Below, piece by piece: positions 4,998 through 33,017 of a stretch of 64,000 nt of DNA. Made by a program: the position numbers and the translations under genes. The DNA comes from Mobula hypostoma (Eukaryota). The stretch's first letter is position 1; the number at the start of each line of letters is the position of its first letter. The stretch lies in assembly GCF_963921235.1 (NCBI RefSeq), contig NC_086110.1, positions 12,834,001-12,898,000 on the forward strand. The letters are read 5' to 3'. Under the pieces are notes generated by a model that was not told where the DNA came from, ran no database searches, and was given only the letters and a program-made list of their open reading frames with translations.

Positions 4998-5006
4998 CGA
5001 ATCCCT

Positions 5007-5126: not shown

Positions 5127-5465
5127 CTGTTAAAAAGATATAGTTAACTCTATTCGTGGCGAGTCAAATGCAATTCAAATTCCATAATGAGAAAATGAGT
5201 ATTAAAACATAAGCGTAAATGAGTAAAATGCGGCATAATAACATTCTAACATCAGTAAATGATATTGCCATGTACAAACGTTTTATGTTATTTCAGAAAC
5301 GGTAGGAAATGTGTTTTCCCTAGCGCTGAAAGTCTTTATGATCTTTTAAGACCGAAATTGATTTTCAAGCACCATTTATTCTACGAGTAGGGTGAGTTTC
5401 TCATCTGCTGTCATCTTTTTTCTTTCGCAGTTATTTCCTTCTCCCTCCATTCCCCAACAGCTTAC

Positions 5466-5500
5466 GCAGGGACAACTGTCACCTTTCTTTTCCTCGGACA
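5466..5500 (-). CDS. Gene A exon 6: cytoplasmic (VSEEKKGDSCPC)
   Basis: Acceptor ccatag|TG, donor TGC|gtaagc, 35 nt, phase 1-0. Supplies exactly the phase change needed to enter the tyrosine-motif frame of exon 7. Confidence 0.6.
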
Positions 5501-5635
5501 CTATGGACTATTGAAGCAGCGTTGTGCAGGTCAGTTCGTCATCGGTTCTCATACACTCACAGACATATCCTTTCTGCGGTCGTAATTGATCATAATATTC
5601 CTCTATCAATTCCTCTCAGAAGCAAAAAGTAAAAC

Positions 5636-5692
5636 CTGTATCACCAACCGGTTCTCCGCTCTGACGTGCTTCCTCGGAGGTTGTTTTAATAC
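5636..5692 (-). CDS. Gene A exon 5: cytoplasmic (GIKTTSEEARQSGEPVGDT)
   Basis: Acceptor ttttttaatccattag|GT, donor CAG|gtttta, 57 nt, phase 1-1, open in frame with the TM exon. Confidence 0.65.
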
Positions 5693-5874
5693 CTAATGGA
5701 TTAAAAAATACAACACCTTAAATAATAGTGGTAACGTTGGAAAAGTTGAAGTTGCGCAGTGGATTGCAATCAAATTTCTTGCCTAAAGGTGTAACTCCTG
5801 ACAGCTGTCCAAAATATTATCGGCGCACACTGTGGCCATGAAATGTGTTGTGCATGACCCTTCATGAATGTAGT

Positions 5875-6058
5875 GGATCTAGATTTTGATTGAAAGAGTA
5901 GATGGGCAGTAGCTTGTGGCTACGGGGGTCAGGGGGTATGGAGGGAAGGCTGGGGCGGGGTTCTGAGTTGGATGATCAGCCATGATCATAATAAATGGCG
6001 GTGCAGGCTCGAAGGGCCGAATGGCCTACTCCTGCACCTATTTTCTATGTTTCTATGT
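5875..6058 (+). mobile_element. CR1 3-prime end fragment in the gene A TM-cytoplasmic intron
   Basis: 3-prime hairpin plus (ttctatgt) tail. 5958-6058 is identical to 41500-41600. Confidence 0.8.
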
Positions 6059-6342
6059 TATATCTCAAAAGAACGAAAATATGACAGTAAAAGTATTATT
6101 ACTTGTGTAAAATCGCCGCAGGAAGTCACAGCCTGAAAACCCCAGGTGTCTGAAAATCGTAGGTACAAGGGATGATTGGAGAACTTGAGCGAGAATGTAA
6201 AATTATCCTGTTATTTATAATTAGTATTGTCGAATGTGAATCCGATAATGCCTTGGAAATCTTGATTCTCTCATTATCATTTCCTCTTTCAATCTGCAGA
6301 GGTAATAAATGGAAATACTTGTCAAATCATTCATGTTCTTAC

Positions 6343-6450
6343 CACGTTTTGCCTTAACTCCGATTCTTATCAAAATTATAATCAGCGTTACAATTGCCAG
6401 TCCGCCCAATGCACTTCGAAAAATCAAGATTTTATTGCTGTCTTCCGGAT
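6343..6450 (-). CDS. Gene A exon 4: transmembrane exon DPEDSNKILIFRSALGGLAIVTLIIILIRIGVKAKR, with Arg near the extracellular side
   Basis: Acceptor ttttttttaacag|AT, donor CGTG|gtaag, 108 nt, phase 1-1. About 21 hydrophobic residues followed by a basic stop-transfer segment. Confidence 0.9.
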
Positions 6451-6910
6451 CTGTTAAAAAAAAACCAACCGTGAAACATATATAAATGTATAGAGACCGT
6501 GAGACAAGAAAGTAGAGCTTTTTAATAGGTAATTCAAGCCTGAACAAATAAAGATTGCAAGAGACGCAGTATGACACGGGTTTTAAGGTGATGATGGGAC
6601 TTATGGAGCGAACAGATAATCTTACATAGTGGTTCTTTACAGACAGTACTTTTTATTTGCATTAAGAGAATTTTTCTTTTTACGATGCCTTTGCAAATAG
6701 TTTAATCGCAACTTCGAAATGACATCGTTTCTGTTTCTGAACTTTCACTCGAAAACTCTCAACAGATTCCATTAGCAAACAAGAGAAAATGACTTTTTAC
6801 CATGTGGAATTTCTCACTGTAAGACAACACAAGAAGCATTAATAGAATATCAAATGTCGACTTTTCAGGCCGAGATCCAACATCATGACTTCATCGAGAC
6901 ACCATCTTAC

Positions 6911-7204
6911 CTTGCTCCTGGATGTAGCTGAAATTGGCAGGCACCGTGAGGGAGACATGCGACACCAGACAGGTGTAAGTATCTTTTCCCAAAGTAGACT
7001 GCGTGATTTCCAATAAACTAAATGCTTCGTACAAGCCGTCCACGTTCCGGTTTGTCACACTTTCTATTCCAGTGCGAATTTGCTTGTTATTTCTTTGCCA
7101 AACGATTTCTAATTTCTCCGGGTAGAAACAAGCCGTTTTACAAAGGAGCTTTCGAGGAGACGAAAACCCTCCAACAGGAACAATTTCCACTGGAGTTGGA
7201 GGAG
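6911..7204 (-). CDS. Gene A exon 3: C1-set Ig constant domain
   Basis: Acceptor ctcaag|CT, donor CAAG|gtaag, 294 nt, phase 1-1. C1 hallmarks LLCKTACFYPE, IVW, NVDGLY, YTCLVSH. Confidence 0.95.
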
Positions 7205-8334
7205 CTTGAGTAAAAACATAGTTATATTGAGTATTTTCAATCCATATCAGTACAGGTAGATTCCTTTATCTCCCCGCCAACTAGCATGACGTTCAACTAT
7301 CAAATTAGTTACCCGCTAGTATTAACCAGTATTTAATAAATTCTTTCAACTTCACGTTCTGTTTATTGTTGCTCATCCATACACACACACTCCGAAGCGA
7401 ACCTTTGTTCTTCTGGGGCCAAGTTGCAAAATAGAGTATATATAGTCACACACATATAGTCACCATCCAGCACTGACAGTCACAAAATAAGCAAAATAAA
7501 ATATAGTCAGTTTGGGAGAAGGATGAAAGGAGAAGTTCAGCGAATGCACCTCGATGGCGAAGCTAAGAGATCCGAAGTGAGGAAGACGTTCTCTTTTGAA
7601 TGGCGTTTGAGCTTCATTGCACAGTTGGGCTTGCGGCGGGCGTTAGCTTTGGAAACCAGACTACCTTTGGATTTTTCATTTCGTATCAAAACTGAGCTAC
7701 AAATCCCAAACTATCACAGATTTCTATAGTATGAATGCACATGAAGTTTAATATTCTGGCAGCTCAACTGCTTCGGGAGTGTTTCAAGTCCTGGGGTTGA
7801 GCTTTCTAGTCATAAACATTCAGTAATAGAGCTTTTCCCGGAATGTGAACCATTCCTGGAACTGTTACCCCGTATTGATTGTGACAAATCATCTCTTCCG
7901 TGAAACAACCAGGAATACAAATGCAAATTGATATTAAGTTCTTTGATTCTATAGTTGTTTTCTTTCTAAAGTCTGAAGACATGCAGCAAACTGGTCGACA
8001 GTGACTTGGCACTGCTATAGGATCGTTTATGAAAACGATGCCTTGTAGAGGGTCAATCAGGAATTGAACAACTTCAATTTCACCATGCACCGTGTTTACT
8101 AAAACGTGAGACCAATTTTAAGATTTTGTAAACGTGGACCACTTCCGCGACAGCTATGGTCGGTGTCTGACAGGGGAGATTCAATAGTTAGATTGTTTTA
8201 TCTGTTTATCACAGCAGTTAGGGTTTCGCTGTGCCTACAATAGTCATCCTGAGCGTTGCCTGACTCCACTTCCCACGCCTATACCGACGTCAACGTTCTT
8301 GGCCTTCTCAAATTCTAGGTGAAGGACAATTCTA

Positions 8335-8700
8335 AGGTGAAAAAAAATGAAGGGATTCTACAGATACATTAAGCATAAAGGGATAGCGACAGACAAAGTT
8401 GATCCATTTGAAGATCAGCGGGTTCAACAATACCTGGAACCGAAAGAACATGAACCTTATATATTTCCATTCGTATTTATTCGGGAGACGTACACAGAGA
8501 CTAAGGCAAAACAGAAGCAATGTCATGGCCCATATACCGATTACAGTCTTGAGGCAGATTAGGGTGTAGCAGTCCCCAGGACATGGCAAAGATTCCCATC
8601 GGACCTTTTCGGAAGCTAGTGCAGAAAGTGAAAGGGCCCCGATAGAGGTATTCAAAACGTTCTTACCCGTGGGTGAAGTGCCGGAGGACTAGATTATAAC
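8335..8700 (+). mobile_element. CR1 ORF2 fragment
   Basis: KGFYRYIKHK-type motif in ORF 8347-8562. Confidence 0.7.
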
Positions 8701-8711
8701 TAATGTTTTAA

Positions 8712-10265
8712 TACCATATAACTATAGGATATAGGAGCCTAAGCCCACCAAGTTTGCTCTGCAATTTCATCATAGATAATATTTTCTGCTCAGCCCCAAT
8801 CTCCTGCCTTCTCCCCATAGCTCGTCATGCTCTATCCGATCAAGAATCTATCAACCTCTGCTTGAAATATCCATAAAGGCTTGGTCTCCATACCTGCCTG
8901 TGGCAAAAAAAAAAATTCCACAGGTTCTGCACTCTCTGGCCATAGGCTGTCCTCTTCATCTCCTCTGGACTCTTCCACCATAGGAAGCATCCTCTCCACA
9001 TCCACGCGATCAAGTACTTTCACCTTTCTTTAGGGTTCAATGCCGTCGCCCCTGTTTTGTTTCTGAATTCCAGTGAAGTCAGGCCCAGAGCCATAAAACG
9101 TTCTTCATATGACTAGCTATTGAATTCTGGAATCATTGTCATGAACCTCCTTTGAATCTTCTCCAGTTTCAGCATATTCTTTCCAAGATAGGGGGCCTAA
9201 AACTGCTCACAATACGCTGTGACGCCTCACCAGTGCTTTATAAAGTCTGAATATTACATCCTTGCTTTTATATTCTAGTCCTCTTGAAATGAATGCGATC
9301 ATTGGATTTGCCTTCCTGACCACAGACCCAACCTGTATGGAATACAGCACACGGACTCGCAAGTCCCTTACCACCTCAATGTTTTTTTGTGTTTTCTCTC
9401 CAGTTGGAAAATATTCAAAACTTTCACACCCTCCACCAAACTGCATGACCACACACTTCTCGATACTGTATTCTATCTGCCATTTCTTTGCCTGTCCTCC
9501 TAATCTGTCTCAGTCTTTCTGTAGCCTCTCTATTTCCTAAAACTACCTACCCGTCCACCTCTCTTCATATCGTCAGCAAACTTTGCAACAAAGCCATCAA
9601 TTCCACCATCCTTATCATTGACATATAACCTTAAACGAATCGGTCACTGCACAGACCTCTGTGGAACACCGTTAGTCACGGGCAGCCAACCAGAAAATGC
9701 TCCCTTTATTCCCATTCTTTGTCTCTTACAAACCAGCCACTGCTTTATCCACCCTAGAATCTTTCCTGTTATACTTTCGGCTCGTAGCTTGTTTAACAGC
9801 CTTGTGTGTGGTACCTTGTCAAAGTCCTTCTGAAAATCCAAGTACACAGCAATCGATTCTGCCTATCTTTATCTATCCTGCTTTTATTCCGTCAAATAAT
9901 TCAATCAGATTTGTCTGGCGAGAGTTTCCTTTGAAGAAATCATGCTGACAATGGCGTGTTTTATTATGTGTCTCCAAGTAACCTAACACCTGATCCTTAA
10001 TGATGGACTCCAACATCTTGACAACCAGTGAGGTCAGACTGACTGGCCTATAGTTTCCACTTTCTGCCTCTCTACCTTCTTGAAGACTGGAGTGACATTT
10101 GCAATTTTCCAGTCTTCCAGAACCATTCCAGAATCTAGTAATTCTCGGAAGACCTTTACTGATGCCTCCAGAATCTCTCAGCAACTTCTATCAGAATCAT
10201 GATATGTACATAATCTGGTCTCGGTGAATTACCTTCTTTCAGACCTTTCAGTTTCCCAGGAACTT
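8712..10265 (-). mobile_element. CR1 ORF2 3-prime half, degenerate
   Basis: NYRPVSLTS, YLDFQKDFDKVPH and KANPMIAFISRGLEYKSK in the minus-strand ORFs. Confidence 0.9.
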
Positions 10266-10299
10266 GCTCTCCAATTATGTCCCTAGTTTTGCTGTTGTT

Positions 10300-11420
10300 C
10301 TAGATAGACTCTCGGAAGAAACCAGCTAGTCTATAATATAGTTGGTATTACAGTGAAGTGGGTAAATTATTGGAAGATAATTCCAAAGATTGGGATACAT
10401 AAATATTTAGATAGACTGGGCTTGTTTGGGAATAAGCAACATTATTTTGTGCAATGTAGGATCTGTCTAACCAATCTTAATGAGCTTTTCGAGCTGGTTA
10501 CCATGGATCTTGATGAAGGATAACAGTGGATATGGTCAACATGGATTTTAGCAAGAACTTTGGAAAAGTTCTGCAGCGGGGTGGTGGGCTGATCAAGTAC
10601 GTTCGCTTGGCATTCAGGATGAAGGAGTAAGTTGTGTCTAACGTTGGGTTCGCGGGAGAAGCCAGAGTATGGTAGTAGATGGTTGGTTTTTGATCGTAGG
10701 CCTTTGACTGGTGGTGTGCCGCATGGCGACCAAAGCTTGCAGCGGGTTAAGGACCAGGTGTAAAAATGCGCTGAAAATGGCAGATAGGATTTAATGAAGG
10801 TAATTGTAAGCTGTTGTTCTTTGAGAAGACAAACCATTCTTTGATATACACAGTGAACGAGACTGGCATTGACGAGTGCGGTAAAAATAAATCTTGGAAT
10901 TATAGATCGATAATTCAATGAAAATGGAGTCAAAGGCGGATGGTATCGTAAAGATAACCTTTGTCATATCGGCCTTCATATATCAGCGTATTGAGTGTAG
11001 AAGTTGGGATGCCATGCTGAAGATGTATTAGACGTCAGTGAGAACAAATTTGGAGTATTGTTCGCAGTTCTCGTTACTTATCTGCAGGAAAGTTATCAAT
11101 ATGTTTGAATGAGTAGAAAGAAAACTTACAACATGTGGCAGGAATTTGAGGACATGAATTATGAGGAAAGTTTAACAGGTAAAGATTTTTTTCCATGATT
11201 CTTAACAGAACGAGCGAACATTTGATAGAGGTATACAAAATTATGAGGGATGTAGATATGATGCATCTAAGCCTGCATTATCCACTGAGGTTGGGTGAGA
11301 ATGTAATTGGAATTCATAGCTTCAGAGTGAAATGAGAAGTATTAAAGGCGAACCTGAGGGGAAATGTCTTCACTCTGACGGTGATGCTATTGTGGAGTGA
11401 GCTGACAGCGGAGGTGTTTG
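10300..11420 (+). mobile_element. Old degenerate CR1 RT region
   Basis: Decayed gtcaacatggattttagcaag and ttggagtattgt-type RT and 3-prime landmarks, with many stops. Confidence 0.7.
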
Positions 11421-12203
11421 CGCTCGACTCCCTGCGCTTTACTATTCAACCGTATCAAAATTCATCTCAATCTTGAGAGGTCGATATTTCTGCCCGTTTT
11501 GTATGGTGAAAGAAGTATAGATTTTGCTAATCCTGCATGATAAAAGTTGGAATGACATTTTGCAGTGCATGCGATAAATTGTTACTTGATGTTAGAATTA
11601 ACTCATTTGGAGCTGGGTATTATTCCTGTCTACTTGTTGATGGGGAAATGGAGCATTGTGCTGCTACAGGCAGATTCTTTGATAGAGATTACTCTATTTA
11701 AGTATTAATATTCTGCGTCCTCTGTGATGCGGAATCGAGTTATCCAACTCCAGCCATTCACATTAATATTAATATTATTTCAGCCTCTTGCTTGCAACAC
11801 AATCCTAACCTTACTTGAAAAGTAATTCGTTATATTCAAAGTACCTTCGCGATAATGAGGGTAACGTCCTAAGCTATCACTACCCTTGGACATTCGGTTT
11901 AATTGGGAGATAGCTGATGAGCAGGGCTGGACGAACAGCAGTGGGGAAGGAGCCGGGGAAGTACGATACGATTAACGGAATCAACTCCACTATGCGCCTA
12001 ATAGTTGCTACATGAAATGTGATTAATTTTTCTGCTCTTTATAATTCTGAATTTAAAATCACTGGACTGGGGTATATTTTAACACGGAAATCAAATGTAT
12101 TCTCACCGTTTGTTTTATCAAGTAGAAATATTTCGTTTTATCCCCATCACTAAGTTTGATGTAAAATGCACAGAGCCGAAAATCTCGAAACGGCCACACT
12201 CAC

Positions 12204-12509
12204 CGAACACAGTGAACTTGGTGCCACCTCCAGTCCCTAAGTATTGTTCCTGAAACTTTACTGCACAGTAATACAGCCCAGAGTCGCTGAATTTGACATT
12301 CCAGAGTACAAGTGTTCCTCTTCCCCTTTCTACAGTAAATTGTCTTCTGCTGTCCCTTTCTAAAAACCCCTTCTCGCCTTTCCTCCACCAACGAACGTCA
12401 ACGGTATCGTTTGTCAGTAGTAATTTGCAGAACATCGTAACATTCGCACCAACCGGGACGTTCAGGTCCCGAGGGAATTGAGATACTTCGTTCGCCGTTA
12501 ATTTGACGA
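12204..12509 (-). CDS. Gene A exon 2: single-exon V(J)-type Ig domain (non-rearranging)
   Basis: Acceptor ggcag|TC, donor TTCG|gtgagt, 306 nt, phase 1-1. Shows B-strand Cys (TMFC), C-strand WW, DSGLYYC and a J-like GGGTKFTV inside the same exon. Confidence 0.95.
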
Positions 12510-12548
12510 CTGCCGGATAAATAAGCAAGAGTATTAATAACAGTTAAA

Positions 12549-12569
12549 CACAGTGAATTAACAAAAACT
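12549..12569 (+). other. RSS-like motif CACAGTG-aatta-ACAAAAACT with a non-canonical 5-nt spacer in the leader-V intron
   Basis: Perfect heptamer and 8/9 nonamer, with the heptamer facing the V exon 39 nt away. Confidence 0.3.
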
Positions 12570-12712
12570 GATGACGTAAGTCACTGGATATCTAAGAGTG
12601 AAAGACGGCCGAATAGATGAAAAACTGTAACCGAATATGCCGCAGGCACCCAGAGTTAAATATTATTAAATAGAATATTCAATTCGGAAACGGCGTTTAT
12701 AAATCAGCATAC

Positions 12713-12767
12713 TTAGCCAAGTAATAGCCAGAAGTGCTATGTACGAAACCGTAAACTTCTCCGCCAT
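12713..12767 (-). CDS. Gene A exon 1: signal peptide MAEKFTVSYIALLAITWL (phase 1)
   Basis: ATG at 12767, 18 hydrophobic codons plus 1 nt, donor A|gtatgc. A paralogous 55-nt exon lies at 32963-33017 at a similar distance from its V exon. Confidence 0.8.
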
Positions 12768-12844
12768 CTTACAGAAACCAAATCGACCAATTCTTGCAAT
12801 GCAAGTGGTATTTTAAACAATTTTCTGGAGGAAAAGGACTTCGT

Positions 12845-16249: not shown

Positions 16250-17735
16250 TTAAAAAAAGTCAACTGCACTTACCATTGATGTTTTCAGAGAAGCACAATC
16301 CGTCTGTTGTTGTGATTGGCGGTGAAATCGTCAATGATTTTCTGGATGTCAAGTGCTTTGGTCCACCGGCTGTTTATGGCCAACAGGGCCATGTTGCTGT
16401 TCTGAACATCGCCGCTGCTATTCCTTAGGTAGTTTTTGAGGCGTCGGAGGCAAGAGAAACTCCGTTCGCATGAGGCAGATGTCGCAGGTAGAGACAGTGA
16501 TATGCAGATTAGTTTGTATAAGTCTATAAATGCATCGCGGTAGGGTCTCATTAGAGCTAGAAATTCCACTGTCCTTGCTAGAGACTCAACCACTGCTCTC
16601 ATATACTCACGATTTTCTTGGACAATCTTTGCATGTCCTTTGTCAAGCATATTTCCTAATCTTGAACCATCTTGTTTTCTCAAACTGAATTCGGCCCGTG
16701 CCTCCATAACAAACTTATGAGCTGCACTTGAATGGTGGGTTTTGAAAGCTATTATAGCTTTCCGCGAGTTGTGGTAATCGGTGACAGTGAAGGTAGACTC
16801 AGAATGGAACCCATGTTCTCCACACAGGAAATGCCTGCATGCGAAGCAGAATGTAATATCTTTCGTGATCGAATATTCCAGTCAGTCAAACCAGCCACGA
16901 ATAAAACTCCTTTGCTGATTGTCAAACTGTTGCGAGTAGCGAAGGTTCCTTTCTCAATGCTGACCGACGGGGTCCTTCCTCAGGCTGCTGGCTAACATCG
17001 CTAACATTATTCCCGCTCGCACTAAGAGCAGTTTCATCCACGTTCTCTTCGGAATCCCGCTCCATTTCTTGTTCCTCTACTTCGCCCTCACACTCCTTCG
17101 ATGAACTGCTGTCGCCCTCATCCCCACTTACTTCTTTCTGCATGTCACTTTCAATTCAGACAGGCTCAGGCTGAGACACCACTGATCCCTCTGGATGAGG
17201 TCGTTTTCTCCCTAAAAATCGATCCATTTTTCACTCCGGCCAAAATAATGCACGTGCCAGGCCCACAATAGCTTGTAAAAGCACAATGTGTGTGTGTGTG
17301 TGTGTGTGTGGGGGGGGGTGCACCCGTTAGTCTCGCGAGACCATGGATCTGCGCCTGGATGTATACTGTCAATCTCTCGCGTGAGTGAGAGAGAGTGACA
17401 TCACCACCTTAAGTGATCTTAGATCAGTTTAACTGATCTGAGGACAGTAACGACAAGACATTGACAACGAACGAATAAGCAGAAGTGTAGGGTGGATCTT
17501 ACAGAGCTTATAACTTTATTGCTGCGTGGGTGCTATGGTAGTTGGGGGCACTGTTTCACTATATCAACTGGAGAAACAAGCTGTATTCAAAACTATACAG
17601 AGAAAGCAAAGCAGCTGCAATTTGTATGTGAAATTTCAGTTAATTTCTTGGTGGTGCTACGGTGGTGCTATTGTAATTTCTGTTGGGGCTAGAGCACCAG
17701 CTAGCACCACCTTAGCGCCGCCCCTGAAACCTCGA
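16250..17735 (-). mobile_element. hAT DNA transposon relic (C-terminal dimerisation domain)
   Basis: LSLPATSASCERSFSCLRRLKNYLR in ORF 16285-16707, and a TIR-like TAGCGCCGCCCCTG near 17723-17736. Confidence 0.8.
17287..17310 (+). repeat. (TG)n microsatellite
   Basis: Directly visible. Confidence 0.95.
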
Positions 17736-20806: not shown

Positions 20807-21633
20807 ACTCGGAGGGGTGGTGGTGAACACATGTGCCTTGGAGCTGAGGGGTGCAAGAAGATGGGGCAGAGCGAGACACAGTATACTAGGGTTCATCTAC
20901 AACTGCCGAGCGTGGTATCTAAGATCCTGGGTTATGGAATATGAAAGTGGAATACTCAGAGACAGGCCACAGAATGTTAACCTTTGATGCAAGCTCTTGA
21001 GGAATATTGTATCATTTCTTAATGCATGCATTACTAAATGACAATAAAAGAGGACTGCGGGTCCTCATAATCTAAGGGACAAGAAAGCTGTACTGCACCA
21101 AGGCAAAATGACTCGGTTTAGCCGCAATTGCGAACCATTTTGATCTTTTTAAATGGTATGTTTTTCTTAGAGGAAGTACAATGACGTTTCTCTAAATTGG
21201 GTCAAGCGGCATCTATGGAGAGAAGTGAACGGTCGAAGTTTCGTGTCCAGACTCTTCATCAGGACTGGAAGAACGGAAAGGGGGAGGACAGTTAGCCAGT
21301 ATTAAAAGGTCAGGAAAAGGTTGGAGCAAGAGTTGGAGAGTAATAACTGGATCCAGGTGAGGAAGTGATTAACATCACTCTCCTAAATCACTTGATCCTC
21401 CCTTGCATTCCTCACAAACTACCTCGATGTTTAATCAGACTAAATTCCTCGCTCACGATCATGGCTGATCCAATTAGAAACTTTGATTCGGCTTTCCTTT
21501 TCGTCTTCAACACACATCGGAATCAGTCAGCTTTACTTTGTTGCTATTCGGTTGCTTTTTAAAATTCTCCGGCAAACTACTGATATGATTTACGCCATGT
21601 AATCTAAAAGGCTGGAACAATGAAGAAAATCAT

Positions 21634-21674
21634 ATTTCAATTCTCGTTCTGGCAGCGTGCGAGTTTGCGTTCAG
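21634..21674 (-). pseudogene. Decayed cytoplasmic exon downstream of the 22.9-kb TM (ERKLARCQNEN*N)
   Basis: Acceptor cattag|CT. Resembles the 28.6-kb exon; contains a stop, and the donor position reads AT instead of GT. Confidence 0.4.
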
Positions 21675-21734
21675 CTAATGAATTAACGAATCGTATGAAT
21701 AATGGTGCCCACGACTGAGGTACAGCACCGATCT

Positions 21735-22745
21735 CTCTAATATTCCCTCTCATTGGATTCCCAATTGTTGATGTCGATGTTACATTTCTTCATGTTGGCT
21801 TTAAAGTCGTCTTTGAATTTCTTATGTTGTCCGCCTTTTATGTTTGCCTTCTTTAAGCTGGGAGTAGAAGATTTCTGTCGGCAGACGTTCGTCTTTCATC
21901 CGAACAACATGACCACTCCATCTTGGTTGGTTCTTGATGACGTGGGCTTCAAAGTTTGTTGTTTTTGCTTCATTTAGCACACTGACGTTTGTCCTTCTAC
22001 CTACCCAGCTGACAGTTAAGATGTTTCGAAGACAACATTGATAGAATTTTTCAAGTGTCTTCAGATGTCGTCGGTATGTTGTCCAGGTTTCTGATGCATA
22101 CAGTAGCGTTGGAATTACCACTGCTATGTACACTAACATTTTGGTGTCTGTTCGGATGTCACGATCACGAAAGATTCTTGTTCGGAGACGTCCAAAAGCT
22201 GTTCCAGCGCATGTTGGATCTCGTCATTAAGGTCGACATTGGAGGAGAGGTGACTTTCAAGATACGGAAAGTGGTCCACATTTTCCAGGGTTGTTTCGCC
22301 AAGTCTCCTGGCAGCATCCACGCTCCAAACACTGACACCTCTCGACTACATCATCGTACGATCTCGGGACAAACAAGATGTACTGATAACAAGAGCGGTT
22401 ACTGGTGCTGACGAGGGCTGGACAGACCATCGACTCATCTTGTCCACCATGAGAATGAAGATTCGGCCCAAAAGGAAACACCAAAATCAGAACACTATTA
22501 AGAAATTTAATGTTGACATCCTTCAAGACAATCAGCCATGTACAGAGGTTCCAACAAACTCTTCAAGAACAACTGGCTGAACAAATCCCAGCAGCTGTAG
22601 AAGAACACTGGAATCCATTGATGAACGCTGCCAACACCTCCTGCGAAGAAACAATTGGGTTCAAGACGAAAAAAAGATCAGGATTGGTTCGATGATAACG
22701 ACAAACTACTCCAACAATTTATCGACGGAAAGAGAAAAGCTTTCA
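21735..22745. mobile_element. RTE/BovB-clade LINE pieces in opposite orientations (RT C-terminus on minus, endonuclease C-terminus on plus)
   Basis: Minus strand: LLYASETWT and RWSGHVVRM. Plus strand from about 22306: WQHPRSKH, DYIIVR and WTDHRL. Confidence 0.85.
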
Positions 22746-22882
22746 AGAATTGTATTTCAAGTAATCAATTTATACTGACATTTTAACTGTCAAACACGAC
22801 AGTTGTAAATCTTCCATTGTATCATTTATCATTTCTATCATTAGAACTAAAAAAAATAAACGAGAAAATGTAAGATTCTTAC

Positions 22883-22984
22883 CATGTTATGCGTTTACGA
22901 TCAATCTTGAGACAATTATAACCAGACCTAAAATTACCAGTCTGCCCAACGCCCACACTATAATCAGTCTTTTCTGCGTTCTGT
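22883..22984 (-). CDS. Orphan TM exon with central Arg and an immediate stop (DRTQKRLIIVWALGRLVILGLVIIVSRLIVNA*)
   Basis: Acceptor cacctag|AC, donor CATG|gtaag. Aligns with gene A TM: GGC GGA CTG becomes GGC AGA CTG, and AAA becomes TAA at 22887-22889. Confidence 0.8.
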
Positions 22985-23079
22985 CTAGGTGAGATGCAAA
23001 ATAAGGAACCGTGAAACAAATACACTTATACAGGGGTTGCGAATGTCTAAGGTCGAGCACTTTAAATGTGTCGCAACTG

Positions 23080-23830
23080 GAGGAGCTCAGCAAGTTAGGC
23101 AACATTTATGGAGGGGAATGAACAGTGCACGTTTCGGACGGAGATGCTTCAAAAGTACTGTAAAGGAAGGGCCCGGAAACCTGCATGTCTGTTGGGGTCA
23201 TCTATTGTATACGGTGCTCCTAGCGCGACATCGCTGAGACCCCACCGCAGATTAAGGTACCTCTTTGACGAGCGCACTCGCTCTGTCCACCGCAAAGGTC
23301 AGGTTCCCCCGGTGCCTACCCATTCAAATTCGACTTCCCATTCCCATTTGAACATGCCTGTCGATGGCCTCCTTTACTGCTGAGGCCAAACTCAGGCTGG
23401 AGGAGTAAAACTATTTATTTTGTTTGGTTCGCTTTTAAACTGATGGCAAGAATATCGATTTCTGTAACTTCCCGTTATTTGTCTCCCCTCTTTCTTTTTT
23501 CCATGAATTCCAAGTCCACTGTCCTCTGCTATTAGATTCTTTCTTCTTCTTCTTCTTCTTCTTCTTCAGCCTTTTACCACTATCTCCTCCCAGTTTTGTA
23601 CCTCGTTCCCATTCCAACACCCACCCACTTTCCCCCTCATCTGGTCTCATCAATTTTCTGTCAGTGTGTACTCCTTCACTCTCCTACGTATTCTGTATTC
23701 TGCCCCCTTCCTTTAGAGTCCTGATGAAGGATCTGGGCCCGAAATATCGACCGTTTGTTCACCTCCATAGATGTAGCCTGACTTGATGAGTTCCTTCAGC
23801 ATTCTGTGTGCATCAAGATTTACACCATCG
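23080..23830 (+). mobile_element. Penelope-like fragment (GIY-YIG remnant plus terminal repeat)
   Basis: gtcatctattgtatacggtgctcc GIY-YIG-type sequence and a hammerhead-like motif at 23717-23752. Confidence 0.7.
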
Positions 23831-24089
23831 GCAGAATCCGTTCTGTTTATATTTTAAATGAGTCTTTCAATCTTCTGTGTACAGCAATTGGAATAATAAA
23901 ATATACAAGTCCAATAGCAAGTTAATGATGGAATTTATAGGGCAAACGGATTACAATACCCAGACACAAGAAACTGCAGATGCTGCAATCTGGAGCAACA
24001 ATCCATCTGCTCGAAAAACCCGACGGTTCAAGCAGCATTTGTTGGAGGAACGCAATTATAAGGTTTCGGGTCAAAACCCTGCATCGTGA

Positions 24090-24693
24090 CAATATTGACC
24101 ATATTGCCTCTCATTCTCAATCCTTTGACATTCTGCATACCAACCACGATGCCTGGTCAAGCTAGTCCCACTTGCCTTATTTTGGTCCATTAACTTCTGA
24201 ACCCTTACTAGCTACAGACCCGTGGAAATGTTTTGTAAACGTTGCTATTGCATCGACTTCAACAATATCCTCTGGCAGGTCATTCCATATCACCCTCCAC
24301 GAAAAAAAGTTGCACTCAAGTTCCTGCTGAATCTTTCCACTTGCACCCTTAATCTATGTCGTCAAGTTCTTGATTCGTTAACTTTGGGAAAAAAAGGCTT
24401 GAGTGCATTTATTTTATCCATGCCACTCATGATTTCATACACTTCTAAACTGTGAGGAAAGAAACCCTAGCCGGGTCAACCAGTCCCAACAATCAGACCT
24501 TCAAGGCCTGTCAACATCACTGTAAATCGTTTCAGCATTCTTTTCAGTTTTATAATATCTTCCCTCCAGGAGGTTGCCCAAAACTGAACACGATACTCTA
24601 AACGTGGTCTCACCAGTGTCTTGTTTTAACCACAACATAATCTCCTCCTCACTCTACTGAATGCCCTGATTGATAAAAGCCAGCATGTCAAAA
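24090..24693 (-). mobile_element. CR1 3-prime fragment, interrupted by a solo LTR
   Basis: Typical reverse-strand CR1 3-prime sequence that appears to resume briefly after 27790. Confidence 0.65.
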
Positions 24694-25328
24694 TGTCATG
24701 GTCCGGTCCGTCAAGTCCTTATTCCAGTTCACGGTCCGGTCCATCGACCCTTGCTCCAGGTTTTCCTGTCTACCCTGTGACTGTTCTTGAGCTCCAATTG
24801 AGGCACCTGATGCCAGTTGGGGCTGGCTGCATAAATACCCTCAGAGACCAGGGCGTGGCTGCTGGATTGTTCTTGTCCTATTCCTTGTATCCCTTCCTCT
24901 GCCTTCTGTTTCCTCGCCGGTAGCCCTGCCTTGTCTTGCCGGTAACTCTCGCCTTGCCTTGCTTTGCCAGAAGCCTTGCTTTGTCTTGCCGGTAACTCTC
25001 GCCTCACCTGAATTTCTCGTCTCCCCTTGCATTGCCTGAAGCCTTGCCTTGTCTTGCTGGTAACTCTCGCTTCGTCTCGCCTGCAGTCTTGTACTGGAGC
25101 CACTCTTTACCTAGCTCCCTTCCTGTCCCTTGCTTCCGCCCAGGTAAGCCAGGCCATCTTACCATTGCCTGCGGTTGGTTCTGTCCCTTCCTGTACCTTG
25201 CCTCCGTCGGGTAAGTCAGGCCGTCTTGCCATTACCTGCGGTTGGTTCTGTCCCTTCCTGTCCCTTGCCTCTGTCGGGTGGTAATCCACGCCCTGCCCAG
25301 GAGAACTGCGCCCTGACCAGGAGGAGGC

Positions 25329-26270
25329 TGCCTGGCCTCAAGCCTGAAGACCCCATCCTCCTGCCTGGCCTCAAGCCTGAAGACCCCAGCCTCTTGCCTG
25401 GCCTCAAGCCTGAAGACCCCATCCTCCTGCCTGGCCTCAAGCCTGAAGACCCCAGCCTCCTGCCTGGCCTCAAGCCTGAAGACCCCAGCCTCCTGCCTGG
25501 CCTCAAGCCTGAAGACCACAGCCTCCTGCCTGGCCTCAAGCCTGAAGACCCCAGCCTCCTGCCTGGCCTCAAGCCTGAAGAGTCCCGCCTCCTGCCTGGC
25601 CTCAAGCCTGAAGAGTCCCGCCTCCTGCCTGGCCTCAAACCTGAAGAGTCCCGCCTCCTGCCTGGCCTCAAGCCTGAAGAGTCCCGCCTCCTGCCTGGCC
25701 TCAAGCCTGAAGAGTCCCGCCTCCTGCCTGGCCTCAAGCCTGAAGAGTCCCGCCTGCTGCCTGGCCTCAAGCCTGAAGACCCCAGCATCCTGCCTGGCCT
25801 CAAGCCTGAAGAGTCCCGCCTCCTGCCTGGCCTCAAGCCTGAGGAGTCCCGCCTCCTGCCTGGCCTCAAGCCTGAGGAGTCCCGCCTCCTGCCTGGCCTC
25901 AAGCCTGAGGAGTCCCGCCTCCTGCCTGGCCTCAAGCCTGAAGACCCCAGCCTCCTGCCTGGCCTCAAGCCTGAAGAGTCCCGCCTCCTGCCTGGCCTCA
26001 AGCCTGAAGAGTCCCGCCTCCTGCCTGGCCTCAAGCCTGAAGAGTCCCGCCTCCTGCCTGGCCTCAAGCCTGAAGAGTCCCGCCTCCTGCCTGGCCTCAA
26101 GCCTGAAGAGTCCCGCCTCCTGCCTGGCCTCAAGTCTGAAGAGTCCCGCCTCCTGCCTGGCCTCAAGCATGAAGAGTCCAACCTCCTGCCTGGCCTCAAG
26201 CCTGAAGAGTAAAGCCTCCTGCCTGGCCTCAAGCCTGAAGAGTCCCGCCTCCTGCCTGGCCTCAAGCCTG
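25329..26270 (+). repeat. 33-bp minisatellite (ctcctgcctggcctcaagcctgaagagtcccgc), about 28 copies
   Basis: Directly visible. Generates the 345, 349 and 312-aa repetitive ORFs. Confidence 0.95.
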
Positions 26271-27560
26271 TAGCCTCTAGCCTCCTGCCAAGCCTCGGCT
26301 CAAGTCCGTAGCCTCTAGCCTCCTGCCAAGCCTCGGCTCAAGTCTCTAGCGTCAAGCCTCAAGCTTCAAGACTACAGCCTCCTGCCTCCTGCCCAGCCTC
26401 AGTTCAAGTCTCTAGCCTCAAGCCTGAAGACTCCAGCCTCCTGCATCCTGCCAAGCCTCGCCTCTAGCCTCAAGCCTCTAGCCTGAAGACTCCAGCCTCC
26501 TGCCTCCTGCCAAGCCTCGCCTCTAGCCTCAATCCTCAAGCCTGAAGACTCCAGCCTCCTGTCTCCTGCCAAGCTTCGCCTCTAGCCTCTAGCCTCAAGT
26601 TTCAAGCCTGAAGACTCCAACCTCCTGCCTCCTGTCAAGCCTCGCCTCTAGCCTCAAGCCTCAAGCCTGAAGACTCCAGCCTCCTGCCTCCTGCCACATC
26701 TCTCCTCTAGCCTCAAGCCTGAAGACTCCATCCTCCTGCCTCCTGCCAAGCCTCGCCTCTAGCCTCGAGCCTCAAGCCTGAAGACTCCAGCCTCCTGCCT
26801 CCTGCCAAGCCTCGCCTCTAGCCTCAAGCCCCAAGCCTGAAGACTCCAGCCTCCTTCCTCCTGCCAAGCCTCTCCTCTAGCCTCAAGCATGGACTCCAGC
26901 CTCCTGCCTCCTGCCAAGCCTCGCCTCTAGCCTCAAGCCTCAAGCCTGAAGATTCCAGCCTCCTGCCTCCTGCCAAGCCTCGGCTCAAGTCTCTAGCGTC
27001 AAGCCTCAAGCTTCAAGACTACAGCCTCCTGCCTCCTACCAAACCTCGGCTCAAGTCTCTAGCCTCAAGCCTCAAGCCTGAAGACTCCAGCCTGCTGCCT
27101 CCTGCCAACCCTCGCCTCTAGCCTCAAGCCTCAAGCCTCAAGCCTGAAGACTCCAGCCTCCTGCCTCCTGCCAAACCTCGCCTCTAGCCTCTGGCCTCAA
27201 GCCTGGACTCCAGCCTCCTGCCTCCTGCTAAGCCTCGCCTCTAGCCTCAAGCCTGGACTCCAGCCTCCTGCCTCCTGCCAAGCCTCGCCTCCAGCCTCAA
27301 GCCTCAAGCCTGAAGACCCCAGCCTCCTGCCTCCTGCCAAGCATCGCCTCTAGCCTCAAGCCTCGAGGCTGAAGACTCCAGCCTCCTGCCAAGCCTCACT
27401 TCTAGCCTCTAGCCTGACGACTCCAGCCTCCTGCCTCCTGCCAAGCCTCGTCTCTAGCCTCAAGCCTGACGACTCCAGCCTCCTGCCTCTTGCCTAGGCT
27501 CGCCTCAAGCCTGAAGCCTGAAGACTCTAGCCTCGTCCTGCCTGCCTGCCAAGCCTCGTC
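26270..27560 (+). repeat. Degenerate higher-order repeat of 5-7-bp modules (cctcaag, cctgaag, actccag, cctcctg, cctctag)
   Basis: Directly visible modular repeat related to the 33-mer. Confidence 0.9.
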
Positions 27561-28189
27561 CTGTCTAGTTCTGGGGTTCGAGCCAGAGGCAAGACCCAGA
27601 TACTGGGTCCTTGTCCAGTCTCTGGCTCGGAGTCCAAGCCGGAGCTCCTAGCTCTCTTGTCCAGCGCTGTTCCAAGTTCCCGGATTCCATGTCCATGTCC
27701 TTGCCCTCAGCCTGTATCCTAGTCCTGTCCCTAGTACTTAAGTGTATGTATCTTGCACTTGGGTCCGTTCCCAGCCACCGCCGTATGACACAAAATTCTT
27801 TTTCACCAACTTTTCGAACACCATTCTTAACTTTTCCAACTCCATTCGTACTCCATTTTCAGCGAACCCTGAATCACATCCATGATTGACATCCATTGTG
27901 AAAACTCTTCTAAATTGTTTATGTACTGTAGATCTCCGAGGCACATAAATAGTCACAGTCGTGGCTTGACCATTCACGGGTCGAGGCGGCGGAAGTGGAA
28001 GGCGCTGCTTGGGCCGACTGCCTGCCCCTCTTCCAAGGGAACGCTCGTGTCCGCCTGTTCTTGGAGAGGGAGCATGCGGTCGCAAAAGACACTTCGGGGG
28101 ACTTCCGGGAGCGGCGCCCCCCCCCGCCCACCGGAATATTGATTGTCTATTAGGCAGCAGTAACCATATTTTAATTTCTGTGTACTCAC

Positions 28190-28216
28190 GGTCTTGTAAA
28201 TATTGAATGTCTGTAC
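28190..28216 (-). CDS. Possible small cytoplasmic exon (VQTFNIYKT)
   Basis: Strong donor ACC|gtgagt, phase 0-0 and in frame. The acceptor is weak. Confidence 0.4.
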
Positions 28217-28589
28217 CTTGTGTATTTGCAATGTAAATACACTTTTATAGTTAAAAAAATCCAGCTTCCATCATCACGCCCTGCTTCTTATAATCAAACC
28301 ACCTCTTTATGGATTGCACGCGAGCTATCCCTCCGGGCAGATTATCGCATGGAATCTTCTTTGAAAAAGTCATGTCTTTAAATCTTCATTATACCCTCAG
28401 TATCTCTTCAAGTGTTCTGATATCTCCTTGTTTTCAAAATGCATGTTAATGCTTTTGCGATTTTGCATTGGAACGTTTAATAAGAGCACATACATTCAAG
28501 TTTTCTGTTTGTAGACTTTAAAATGGCAATGATGTATCAGAGCTGAACAGATTGCACATTGAGTTTAAGCTATCAATAATTGCATTCAC

Positions 28590-28642
28590 ATTTCTCTCCA
28601 TTGCGTTTGGACAGCCGACTAGCTCCTCATCCGAGTTAGAAC
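28590..28642 (-). CDS. Orphan cytoplasmic exon (GSNSDEELVGCPNAMERN)
   Basis: Acceptor ttttttttttgaatag|GT, donor AAT|gtgaat, 53 nt, phase 1-0, open in frame with the 29-kb TM exon. Confidence 0.6.
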
Positions 28643-28944
28643 CTATTCAAAAAAAAAATTCCAGCCTTGGCGGATTTAGGTTTTCAAACACGAGAAAGTC
28701 TGCAGATGCTGGATATCTAAAGCAATACACACAAAATGTTGCGGAACTCCGCAGACCAGGCAGCATCTATGGAATAGAGTCGATGTTTCGGGCAGAAACC
28801 TTTCATCAGGATTTCGTTTTAAAATGGTACTGTCGACTGTCAATCGGAAAATGCTGTCGAAGTCTTATTTCACTACTGAATGCAATATAGCTATCAACTG
28901 CAGAGCAAACTCGGAGCACTTCACAAATCTTTTAATATTCTTAC

Positions 28945-29046
28945 CATGTTTTGCCTTTAATCCGATTGTTGTCGCACTTATTATCGGAGCTACAATTATC
29001 ATTCCGGCCACTGCATATCCGAGAATAAGTCTTTCATCAGTGCTTT
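28945..29046 (-). CDS. Orphan TM exon, uncharged (ESTDERLILGYAVAGMIIVAPIISATTIGLKAKH)
   Basis: Aligns with the gene A TM exon; donor CATG|gtaag. The homologous acceptor reads TG (29053-29054), but an in-frame AG lies 6 nt downstream. Confidence 0.75.
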
Positions 29047-30781
29047 CTAGATCAGGTGAAAAATAAGAAACAAACTCAAGGAATGAGACTCAGGAAGACA
29101 GAGGAGTTATAATGTATCATTCAATCCGTAGTCTGCAATAAATGCAAAAAAAAAACCCAAATAAATCAAGTTTCATAATGGTTATTTGCACAAAAGATAT
29201 TTAAAGCAAGAAATATTTTATTTTCTTTTTTGTTACAGTATACCGGGCAGTTTGACATCAGCTTGAAAATTTCAAAATCTCTAGTATGTTCTGGAAATAT
29301 TGACACGCATCTAAACAGTTTCTAGACGAGAACAAGAGGAACTGGCTTTTATAAGATTGTGCATTTAGCATAGTAGAACTATCAAAGGAACTGCATTGAA
29401 GCTTAAGTTAAATCCATGATTAAGTACAAGTGACTAGATACTGGACGAAGACAAGTAGAGAGAAAGTAGCATTTTGGGATTAAGACAAAAGTGGTTGCAG
29501 AGAAAATTCCAGATTTAAGGGAACAGACCGCTGAGATATAATTTGCAGCAAATAGAGGAACACAACTAAAAGTAACTACGGAATCAATAGATCTAAATAG
29601 CAGGTATGAAAACAAGAAAACATGACTATGATTTGGCTTTGTATCCTTGAATCATGTTTTCAGCATTGTAGTTGATGCTATGTTGTAAATCCACTTTCGT
29701 GTCTGATGTTTAGATCCTTAAATTTCCACGTGTTTAAAGTCCTACCAATTTTAGCCTCTAATATACACAGTGACTTTAAATCCACAATACTCTGAGGTAG
29801 ACTACAAACCGCACGGTGCAAAATTTATACTCATTTACAACTTGAAAAGCAGGCTGGTATCGCGGCTCTGATCTTATATGTGGCTGGTGGAGCTGCGTAT
29901 TTAGTATATTGCCAGGTGGCTCTCTCACTGAAACATAGCTATTTCAGCAAGGTACTTTATTCATTTATTTCAGCGATATTAGATTCATCCATTTCAATAT
30001 CTACCAACAAGAGATCCCACTTATTGTGGGTGTTAGCTTTTGAAACTCTGCTTTTTAACTTTCAGGCAAAGCACATTTTTTGCATATGCATGGAAAGAAA
30101 ACTGTACATTCAGAGTTATCTCAACAGCCTCCCAAGCAATTCTCCCTCTTGCCGCTTTATAGCTCCCCGACAGCATATTTCCACGTCTTATATGCCTTCC
30201 TAATAACACACTGTAGTTACACATCAGCCTTCGTGTTTCCTTCAGAATGCTGTCTGACCCCTTTACTGGTCACAGAGTTTTGTTTCCCAATCATTGGAAC
30301 AAATAAGTACAGATTTTCTCACATTATACTCCTCTTCCATCCTGGCTACGATCAGGGTTTGTTACTTTAATAAATTTGCGAATTTTGCCCTTTCATCACT
30401 TCGTCTTGTATGAACATCCTTATTTCATGCCCTTGGCATTTATGAATCTATTTATTCCAATGCGTTTCCCCGCGTTCTATCGTCATAATCTAGATGATAC
30501 ACGAAACTTTACACACAAAGCTCACATCTTTTCCTCTTGGGAAACAAATGTTCCTGAAATCCAACTCATTGGTCCATCATCTGGTTATCTACCCTGATAT
30601 CTTCTTGTGTACTTTCGAGATCTATGCTTACATTTTAATGCTTTTGTGTAATGTCCAGGTATGTGTCCAAGCAGCAGATGCATTTAAGGATTTTGTTTTA
30701 ACATAAATTAAACTGCAATAAATTAAACTGGCTTGTTAGCAGTTTAAACATAACTTCTCAATATGAATAAATACAGTTCAC

Positions 30782-30825
30782 ATTTCTCGCTTGTGTTTGG
30801 ACAGCGGCTCAGCCACATTTCTCAG
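30782..30825 (-). pseudogene. Decayed cytoplasmic exon, paralogue of 28590-28642
   Basis: Shares CTGTCCAAAC and GAGAAAT|gtgaa with the 28.6-kb exon, but is frameshifted and contains a stop. Confidence 0.55.
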
Positions 30826-30867
30826 CTGGGTTGCTTCTTTTTTTTAGAAAAATCAAGCCTTACCTTC

Positions 30868-31760
30868 GCAAAGATGAGGAAATCTGCAGATGCTGGAATT
30901 TCAAGCAACGCACATCAAAGTTGCTGGTGAACGCAGCAGGCCAGGTAGCATCTATAGGAAGAGGTACAGTCGACGTTTCGGGCCAAGACCCTTCGTCAGG
31001 ACTAATTGAAAGAAGAGCTAGTAAGAGATTTGAAAGTGGAAGGGGCGGGAGAGATCCAAAATGATAGGAGAAGACAGGAGGGGGAGGGATAGAGCCAAGA
31101 GCTGGACAGCTGATTGGCAAAAGGTATATGAGAGGATCATGGGACAGGATGCCTTGGGAGAAAGAAATGCGGGAGGGGAGAAGCCCAGAGGATGGGCAAG
31201 GGGTATAGTGAGAGGGACAGAGGGAGAAAAAGGAGAGAGAAAAATAGAATGTGTGTATATAAATAAATAAATAAACAAACAAACAAATAAATAAATAACG
31301 GATGGGGTACAAGGGGTAAGTGGGGCATTAGAGGAAGTTTGAGAAGTCAATGTTCATGCCATCAGGTCGGAGGCTACCCAGACGCAATATAATGTGTTGT
31401 TCCTCTAAGCTGAGTGTGGCTTCATCTTTACAGTAGAGGAGGCCGTGGATGGACATATCAGAATGGGAATGGGACGTGGAATTAAAATGTGTGGCCACTG
31501 GGAGATCCTGCTTTCTCTGGCAGACAGAGCGCAGGTGTTCGTCGAAACTATCTCCCAGTTTGCGTCGGGTTTCACCAATATATAGAAGGCCGCATCGGGA
31601 GCAGCGAACGCAGTATATCACCCCAGCCGACTCACAAGTGAAGTGTCGCCTCACCTGGAAGGACTGTCTGGGGCCCTGAATGGTAGTGAGGGAGGAAGTG
31701 TAAGGGCATGTGTAGCACTTGATCCGCTTACAAGGATAAGTGCCAGGAGGGAGATCGGTA
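30868..31760 (-). mobile_element. Penelope-like element 3-prime part: GIY-YIG endonuclease plus terminal repeat
   Basis: ORF 31328-31654 reads FTCESAGVIYCVRCSRCGLLYIGET. Confidence 0.9.
30968..31003 (-). ncRNA. Minimal type I hammerhead ribozyme motif (Penelope-type)
   Basis: AGUC-CUGACGA-A-GGG-UCUUGG-CCC-GAAAC-GUC-GACU: intact core, helix I, helix II and an ACGU palindrome in place of helix III. Confidence 0.8.
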
Positions 31761-32462
31761 AAGCGTGGAGGTTTCTGGTGTGTTATTGTTAGTAACGGAA
31801 AATAGACTGCAGTGAAAATGATAGAACAATACCGACGTCAATGAGAATTCTATTCTGGCTAAACACAAAACGAGAACTCGATCAAGGTCTGTTTCTGAGT
31901 TTGCTCAAAAGTCGAATAATGCATATTAACGACCGTGGTTCTGTTTTGCGCTGGAGACACATTTAGTACTCCTTGTAAGAAGAATCGATTGTTCTTTTTA
32001 TCAATTTTTCTTAACGTTTCGATCGTGGCAATGATTCCCAGTCGCGCAAAAGCCACTGTCTACCAACGCCTTTGAATTGTTCAATGATAACTTAGAAATT
32101 ACTAGTTTATGTTTAATTTAACTTATTTAATTAGTTTAAGAATTTGAAGTGATGGAGGCAAAAATCACTTTGTTTGCCAGTTAATAGGGACGACAGCGAA
32201 TTTCCATGGTTGTGAATGGACAAATTCTTCCGAAGAAGAACGAAATGAACTGTAGAAACTCCATTTCTGGTTGCACCAGCCTGTTTGTTACTTTTAGAAC
32301 TTGCTGTCTTACATTTCCGCCTCTGAAGTTGTTTTTAAGGTATACTGAGGTTTGGTGAGCGCAGTTTCTAGTCCAGTATAAACACTTTATATAATTGCAA
32401 TCAAAATTTACAAAATTGAAAAGAGCTTAAAATTCCCTGCTTCCAGGAAGAAAGATACTTAC

Positions 32463-32768
32463 TTAACACAATAAGCTGGGAGCCACTTCCGTTTTCGAAA
32501 ATTTATTGCTGACCTTTCACTTGACAGTGATAAACTCCGAAGTGAGCGGCACTCGCATTCAGGAGGGTAAATGTCCCCCTGCCCCTCTTTAAGTAGAATT
32601 GTTTTCTGCTGTCTGGTACTAGAAATGCCTTTTCGCCCTTCCTCCACCACGAAACTTCAGCCGGATCTTGTAATATTGGAAACCTGCAGGACATGGAAGT
32701 GGTTCCGCCTCTGGAGACCTTTAAAATTGGAGGGAATTGTTGCACTTTGCTCGAAGTTGCTTTTACAG
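32463..32768 (-). pseudogene. Gene B exon 2: V(J) Ig domain paralogue with an in-frame TAA in the CDR3-equivalent loop
   Basis: Acceptor ttttgacag|CT, donor TTAA|gtaagt, 306 nt. Ungapped alignment to gene A V (about 44/101 identical by hand). TAA at 32503-32505; J-like GSGSQLIV follows the stop; DSG has decayed to HFG. Confidence 0.9.
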
Positions 32769-32962
32769 CTGTCAAAACATAAGCAAGAACGATACAAACG
32801 GTTGCATACACGGTTAAAGAAGAAAAAAGAAACAACAGACTAAAAAAAATAACAATTATGAAACACCGGGAATCGAATTGGAGAAGATAGAATTTCAGCT
32901 GATACCCGACGTAGAAAATTGTAAATTAGGGTTACTATTCAAAAACAGCACATAAACTGCAC

Positions 32963-33017
32963 CGTGCCAAACTACTGGCAGATGAACCATGTACCAAAGA
33001 GCCGCGTTCACCGACAT
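32963..33017 (-). pseudogene. Gene B exon 1: leader MSVNAALWYMVHLPVVWH
   Basis: ATG at 33017, 55 nt, phase 1, donor G|gtgcag. Same length as the gene A leader and a similar intron (194 vs 203 nt). Confidence 0.7.

Follow-up and report, generated by a model that had tools for sequence, protein, structure and literature searches.

Probable pseudogene debris in a tandem array of SIRP-like receptors of the lesser devil ray

Downstream of a variable (V) exon of an immune-type receptor gene of the lesser devil ray (Mobula hypostoma), here called gene B, lie two orphan cassettes, each consisting of a transmembrane (TM) exon and a cytoplasmic exon, one with an uncharged membrane span and the other with an arginine in it. 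The locus raises the question of whether these are remnants of genes that lost their ectodomain exons or alternative 3' modules that join one ectodomain to an inhibitory or an activating tail. It was addressed in a window of 64,000 nucleotides (64 kb; contig NC_086110.1, positions 12,834,001 to 12,898,000), in whose coordinates all positions are given and on whose minus strand all studied exons as well as gene B and a neighbouring receptor gene, gene A, are encoded. The stretch is probably pseudogene debris of a tandem birth-and-death array of chondrichthyan SIRP-like receptors, which are built from V(J) and C1 domains, a TM segment and a tail with immunoreceptor tyrosine-based inhibitory or switch motifs (ITIM/ITSM). 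No inhibitory motif is encoded in it, and the arginine, which arose by a single point change in an exon that is dead or dying, does not point to an activating receptor.

The receptor family and the exons of the stretch

Gene A (5-12.8 kb) is a SIRP-like V-C1 receptor, and its spliced product is the RefSeq protein P0155 of M. hypostoma, which comprises a leader and the following exons:

12202-12492, minus strand: V exon (V-A)
6912-7205, minus strand: C1 exon (C1-A)
6341-6451, minus strand: TM exon (TM-A)

A full HMMER search with V-A and two subsequent word-based searches yielded about 40 relatives from rays, sharks and a chimaera. They include P0015, P0037 and P0155 in M. hypostoma (the loci of the first two are placed on an 80.6-Mb chromosome), P0151, P0183 and P0185 in Mobula birostris, and others in Hypanus, Narcine, Heterodontus, Scyliorhinus and Callorhinchus. 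Their naming in RefSeq is inconsistent and includes NCR3LG1-like, SIRP-alpha-like (tyrosine-protein phosphatase non-receptor type substrate 1-like), tapasin-related-like and even Ig-lambda-like; by Pfam the family domains are V-set and C1-set. The aligned relatives share an exon plan of leader, V with a J-like end, C1, TM and three cytoplasmic exons (cyt1, cyt2 and cyt3). The TM exon has 102 nucleotides (nt) and ends with a basic motif and a split Gly codon, and cyt1 has 53 nt encoding 17 residues, often ..S.(D/E)xC(Q/G)(N/E)E... The tyrosine motifs of the family are confined to cyt2 (..YA(P/T)LN.. and ..(I/V)(I/V)Y(S/A)(Q/K)T) and cyt3 (LTYAAL ... LYADV). Some members (P0051, P0131, P0159 and P0168) have a charged span and a short tail, and their occurrence beside members with tyrosine motifs makes this a paired-receptor family. 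A subgroup (P0167, P0191 and P0184) carries an acidic or basic residue within the span (LI(L/I)AYTVDGL, LILSYTLKGA) yet has a long tail with tyrosine motifs, which is unusual among inhibitory receptors.

Upstream of gene A the following parts of family members were recognized:

32963-33017 (boundaries approximate), minus strand: leader exon of gene B, MSVNAALWYMVHLPVVWH, with ATG at 33017 and a GT donor, resembling the family leaders MSV(D/R)A..W
32463-32768, minus strand: V(J) exon of gene B (V-B), 306 nt, phase 1 to 1, acceptor and donor intact
30782-30825, minus strand: c0, a decayed copy of cyt1, 44 nt instead of 53, with a TGA at 30809-30811
28945-29046, minus strand: TM1, an intact TM exon of 102 nt, phase 1 in and out, reading STDERLILGYAVAGMIIVAPIISATTIGLKAKH
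28590-28642, minus strand: c1, an intact 53-nt cyt1 exon, SNSDEELVGCPNAMERN, open, with AG and GT, phase 1 to phase 0
22883-22984, minus strand: TM2, a TM exon of 102 nt, phase 1, with Arg in the span (ALGRLVIL)
21634-21674, minus strand: c2, a decayed cyt1 exon, ERKLARCQNEN*N, 41 nt instead of 53

TM1, TM2, c0, c1 and c2 are homologues of the TM and cyt1 exons of the family, on its plan of 102 and 53 nt and in the same phase. Exon homology places the relics in the chondrichthyan SIRP-like V(J)-C1 family, of which they form no complete member, since C1, the tail motifs and an open V exon are wanting.

Lesions, absences and a duplicated segment

The identities of the exons, their lesions, the absences and the duplication reported in this section are direct observations. 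Disabling lesions occur in four of the six family exons of the stretch after the leader, namely V-B, c0, TM2 and c2.

The V exon that the first-pass annotation placed upstream of the cassettes is present and has good splice sites, but an in-frame TAA at 32503-32505, where the family has CAA (Gln), had been overlooked; V-B reads GQQ*IFENGSGSQLIVL where relatives have SQQQIFGNGSGSQLIVL. In addition, the Asp of the DxGxYxC motif, kept by 39 of 39 aligned relatives, is changed to His, and the exon retains the Cys, Trp-Trp and YxC. With the TAA and the loss of Asp, V-B is not the open V exon of a working member. It is closest to the V domains of P0152, P0153 and P0037 (65-69% identity), no retrieved family protein exceeding 69%, and a database search limited to proteins of 60-192 residues, longer ones being outside its scope, returned no protein model containing V-B.

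When 1271 six-frame fragments from 12.8-32.46 kb were compared with the family profiles, only TM1 and TM2 matched significantly (E 6e-5 and 2.5e-4, respectively, with the hidden Markov model, HMM, of the family TM exon). The description of TM1 as an uncharged TM exon and of c1 as an open cytoplasmic exon holds in both parts. TM1 has a polypyrimidine-AG acceptor and a GTAAGA donor, its span has no charged residue, and it ends in KAKHG followed by gt; it has everything found in a family TM exon (102 nt, phase 1, a basic stop-transfer motif, then G|gt). The length and phase of c1 are those of cyt1, it contains no Tyr, and when TM1 and c1 are joined the alignment to P0167 and P0191 extends through the GC(Q/P)N motif. 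The TM1-c1 cassette has no terminal tail exon, and with the lesions of TM2 and c2 the two cassettes are not both open and complete.

A third cytoplasmic exon formerly assigned to this cassette (28190-28216, minus strand) was rejected as a chance open AG..GT segment in a duplicated intron. It has no homologue in the family and no extra conservation, and its translation in the phase that follows from c1 is VQTFNIYKT, a frame other than that of the first-pass annotation. Comparable open AG..GT segments of phase 0 number 185 in the 990 nt that follow c1, and Tyr occurs in 97 of them.

The second cassette, described before as an Arg-TM with a truncated tail, does consist of genuine family exons, but the truncation is caused by an overlooked stop inside the TM exon itself: an in-frame TAA at 22887-22889 (AAA, Lys, in the family), two codons before the donor. 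TM2 keeps a polypyrimidine-AG acceptor and a GTAAGA donor, and its Arg results from a single GGA to AGA change at 22941-22943. The lesions of c2 are a 12-nt shortening, a TGA at 21637-21639 and the change of the donor GT to AT at 21632-21633. This exon is the top match to the family motif SLDRCQNEE in the whole window, with a score of 32 (maxima of shuffled sequences 25.2 +/- 2.1, a score of 32 being reached in about 1 of 100 shuffles); its DNA aligns to the cyt1 region of gene A at 5572-5730 (z 3.3-4), and its strand, phase and place are those expected for a cyt1 exon. An activating receptor combines a basic residue in the span and a short tail with an intact ectodomain; TM2 has the Arg and a stop just past the span, but no ectodomain exon of its own, and the V exon upstream is broken.

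Neither tblastn with 34 family proteins nor profile HMMs revealed a V, C1, cyt2 or cyt3 exon on either strand of 12.8-32.46 kb, the best C1 profile match having an E of 6.1. The absence of V and C1 exons between the cassettes had been noted before and is borne out, and the sensitive search for decayed ectodomain exons that had been proposed for 13-32.4 kb found no decayed V or C1 in this slightly wider interval. The two best sub-threshold matches, both within transposons, were discarded, one to cyt3 (16253-16330), which is an alternate frame of a hAT element, and one to V (21740-21895), which has no Cys and lies beside a reverse-transcriptase fragment. Exons with ITIM/ITSM, of the form (I/V/L/S/T)xYxx(L/V/I), were likewise absent from the interval, as assessed with the cyt2 and cyt3 profiles and nine tyrosine-motif peptides; these peptides matched only the decayed tail of gene A itself (5010-5117 and 791-892). 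The cassettes had been credited with opposite signalling signatures. As no inhibitory motif accompanies TM1, this contrast is reduced to one Arg, and the claim fails.

The fate of the C1 exon can be followed upstream of TM1, where part of an intron survives:

29310-29350, minus strand: weak intron block, homologous to the C1-to-TM intron of gene A (6757-6797), block z 3.4

Together with 29367-29386 this block forms a collinear chain matching the gene A intron (z 5.5). The C1-A exon does not align to the region upstream of TM1 (z 0.2), although a C1 would be expected at about 29.45-29.75 kb. Since an exon should outlast an intron, and here the intron block remains while C1 does not align, the C1 exon was most likely lost by deletion rather than by decay in place. 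Upstream of TM2, an apparent C1 remnant, LYKCICFTVPYFASHL, which aligned to the end of C1, was rejected because it is a translation of the polypyrimidine tract and acceptor region that the three TM exons share, and C1-A DNA gave a z of about 0 against the sequence upstream of TM2.

The alignment of TM-A, TM1 and TM2 covers the exon itself, some 45 nt of the preceding intron and some 12 nt beyond the donor. The three exons are mutually equidistant (64-69% identical; 64% between the TM1 and TM2 cassettes), and the remainder of their introns cannot be aligned beyond the splice signals, which indicates old separate paralogues and not a recent exon duplication. The ratio of nonsynonymous to synonymous substitution rates of the TM exons (1.2-1.5) is based on 32 codons and uninformative except for giving no sign of constraint. 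The shared upstream intron of about 45 nt (TM exons 6341-6451, 22883-22984 and 28945-29046) reads TGTTTCACGGTT..TTATTTTT..CTAG; these common flanks reflect either strongly constrained splice signals or gene conversion confined to the exon.

The decayed cytoplasmic exon c0, correctly recognized as such from the start, is a true paralogue of c1, 9 nt shorter (local alignment score 49, shuffles 15.4 +/- 2.1, z about 16), and no TM exon for it was found between 31833 and 32460. The two exons lie in copies of a 0.67-kb segment that adjoins a retroelement:

30869-31832, minus strand: Penelope-like retroelement between V-B and c0, with a weak GIY-YIG open reading frame (ORF) at 31328-31654
30312-31001, minus strand: upstream copy of the duplicate, with retroelement tail, spacer, c0 and about 450 nt of intron
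28141-28811, minus strand: downstream copy, containing c1 and 28190-28216

The alignment of 31001-30312 with 28811-28141 scores 174, against 58.9 +/- 8.6 for shuffles. It starts within the tail of the Penelope-like element and extends about 450 nt into the intron, with 46-47 matches per 60 columns in the element tail, 42 in the exon and 35-40 in the intron. The exon is conserved no better than its flanks, and the c0/c1 exon has therefore drifted neutrally like its surroundings. Transduction of c0 at the 3' end of the element was considered and rejected, because the homology with the c1 region continues into the intron as in an ordinary segmental duplicate. The retroelement tails differ in apparent age: that of the c0 copy (30869-31001) is 88-94% like other copies in the window, and that of the c1 copy (28685-28811) just 75-79% like any copy, its supposed duplicate included.

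Repeats take up much of the remaining space:

24912-27558, no strand assigned: GC-rich minisatellites, a 33-bp unit repeated 29 times (94% identity) and a 59-bp unit repeated 21 times

These arrays, about 2.6 kb in all, occupy the region in which the TM1 cassette would be expected to have its tail exons, and fragments of hAT elements and of the reverse transcriptase of long interspersed nuclear elements (LINEs) fill other gaps. The GC content of the minisatellites reaches 0.55-0.59, against 0.39-0.45 in the surrounding region, and both of their strands contain open frames of 300-350 codons that encode LLPGLKPEDPS repeats. An ORF at 16285-16707 (minus strand), located between gene A and the TM2 cassette, encodes a hAT-family C-terminal dimerisation domain (Pfam E 1.2e-9) and is a relic of a DNA transposon.

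Remnants, alternative ends or chance

The first of the two readings offered in the first-pass annotation, remnants of genes whose ectodomain exons were deleted, gains support from the damage to four of six exons, the absence of C1 and ITIM/ITSM exons, the intron block that remains without its C1 and the neutral divergence of c0 and c1. From these data we infer the following course of events, in which the cassettes would not be expressed as protein. Gene B would be a pseudogene of which leader, V, TM and cyt1 are left, with a nonsense codon in V and with C1 deleted and the ITIM/ITSM exons lost, and the TM1-c1 pair, intact in sequence, would lead nowhere. The exon c0 would be part of a neutral 0.67-kb duplicate of the c1 region. 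TM2-c2 would represent an older second cassette, all that is left of a further paralogue upstream of gene A, disabled by the stop in TM2 and by the deletion, stop and lost donor of c2. The gaps are filled by the Penelope-like element, the LINE fragments, the hAT element and the 2.6-kb minisatellite.

Several observations weigh against this account. TM1 and c1 are fully open and have good splice sites, and a messenger joining leader, V, TM1 and c1 would be in frame, the TAA of V-B being the only coding defect on its path. A C1-less V-TM-tail isoform, P0007, is annotated in M. birostris. The annotated members P0152 and P0153 end at or just past the TM exon, and the stop at the end of TM2 is hence not by itself disabling. 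The searches would miss a C1 or tail exon whose identity had fallen below about 55-60%. Finally, three public sequencing runs of uncertain kind, inspected over 27900-33000, cover the retroelement only (28.6-28.9 and 30.8-31.8 kb), with zero or near-zero depth over TM1 and V-B, and have no bearing on expression.

It is unlikely, though worth weighing, that gene B encoded a working receptor without C1 until recently, or still does so in other haplotypes or species, made of leader, V, TM1 and c1 with a short tail devoid of motifs; the TAA of V-B would then be a recent or polymorphic null, and only c0 and TM2-c2 would be debris. The intactness of TM1 and c1, whose phases fit the V-B donor, agrees with such a gene, as does the existence of P0007, and V-B deviates at 3 of 21 conserved family positions, which is inside the range of annotated members; however, the one Asp shared by all aligned relatives is among its losses, and c1 has diverged from c0 as fast as the flanking intron has. 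Neither the search of 60-192-residue protein models nor the public runs, with their retroelement coverage, lend it support.

A narrower proposal, that TM1-c1 is the present or recent 3' end of a V-only gene B receptor and TM2 a second alternative end, is decidedly improbable. If it were true, two different membrane segments could serve as alternative anchors of one V domain in devil rays.

The other reading first put forward, in which one ectodomain is spliced either to an inhibitory TM1-c1 end or to an activating TM2 end, is very hard to uphold. The acceptor, donor and phase of both TM exons do fit the V-B donor, and one span is uncharged while the other has Arg, but the only ectodomain exon upstream is broken, no ITIM/ITSM exon follows TM1 and no cassette holds a tyrosine motif, and TM2 and c2 bear lesions. 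Moreover, the cassettes, at 64% identity and with unalignable introns, are old and distant paralogues separated by 6 kb with transposons and a minisatellite, unlike tandem exon duplicates kept for alternative splicing.

That the segments are chance open frames with hydrophobic runs and not receptor relics is next to impossible as a general explanation and is refuted for five of the six exons first proposed: it holds for 28190-28216 only, against the TM profile matches, the splice flanks conserved among three TM exons, the alignment of c0 with c1, and c2 as the top motif match of the window on the correct strand, in the correct phase and place.

Gene A and receptor clusters of other vertebrates

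The composition of gene A (5000-12800) is mixed, with an "A-like" ectodomain (C1 90% identical to P0015) and a "B-like" TM and tail (TM 76% identical to P0037). Its cyt1 (5640-5690) resembles that of P0151. M. birostris has a pair with near-identical ectodomains, P0183, with an A-like TM and an ITIM/ITSM tail, and P0185, the orthologue of gene A. On sequence comparison, gene A and the P0183/P0185 pair suggest that 3' halves may have been exchanged between subfamilies. The open cyt1 exon of gene A, IKTTSEEARQSGEPVGD, is used by P0185, and the RefSeq model P0155 of M. hypostoma reads through the TM donor into the intron instead of using it.

In comparison with complete chondrichthyan SIRP-like receptors, the debris of the stretch shares sequence and exon plan but has no C1, cyt2 or cyt3, is damaged in most of its exons and matched no protein model. 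The ray family resembles the mammalian SIRP alpha, beta and gamma receptors in its ectodomain of V(J) and C1-set domains, the SIRP alpha and gamma chains being among the sequence matches in PDB, and in the occurrence of long-tailed members with ITIM beside short-tailed members with a charged span. Unlike SIRP, which has two C1 domains, the ray family has one, and the stretch holds relics only. The likeness is no proof of orthology, as PDB matches to immunoglobulin constant regions and UrIg2 have equal or better scores.

The KIR/LILR, Ly49, chicken CHIR and teleost NITR clusters likewise show paralogues in tandem, loss of exons, truncation of copies and point changes by which inhibitory receptors acquire a charged span, and fragmentary pseudogenes are usual in paired-receptor clusters. 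The ray relics differ from these in being 3' cassettes of a TM and first tail exon without ectodomain exons, one of them locally duplicated. Unless transcripts show that the cassettes are used, they would add little to what mammalian, bird and teleost receptor clusters have taught. Read as probable debris, the stretch offers an exon-by-exon record of how a receptor copy is dismantled, through deletion of the ectodomain, loss of the tail, duplication of a tail exon, invasion by transposons and a minisatellite, and changes that mimic an "activating" signature. It also advises caution: a charged residue or an uncharged span in an orphan exon should not be taken for a signalling signature.

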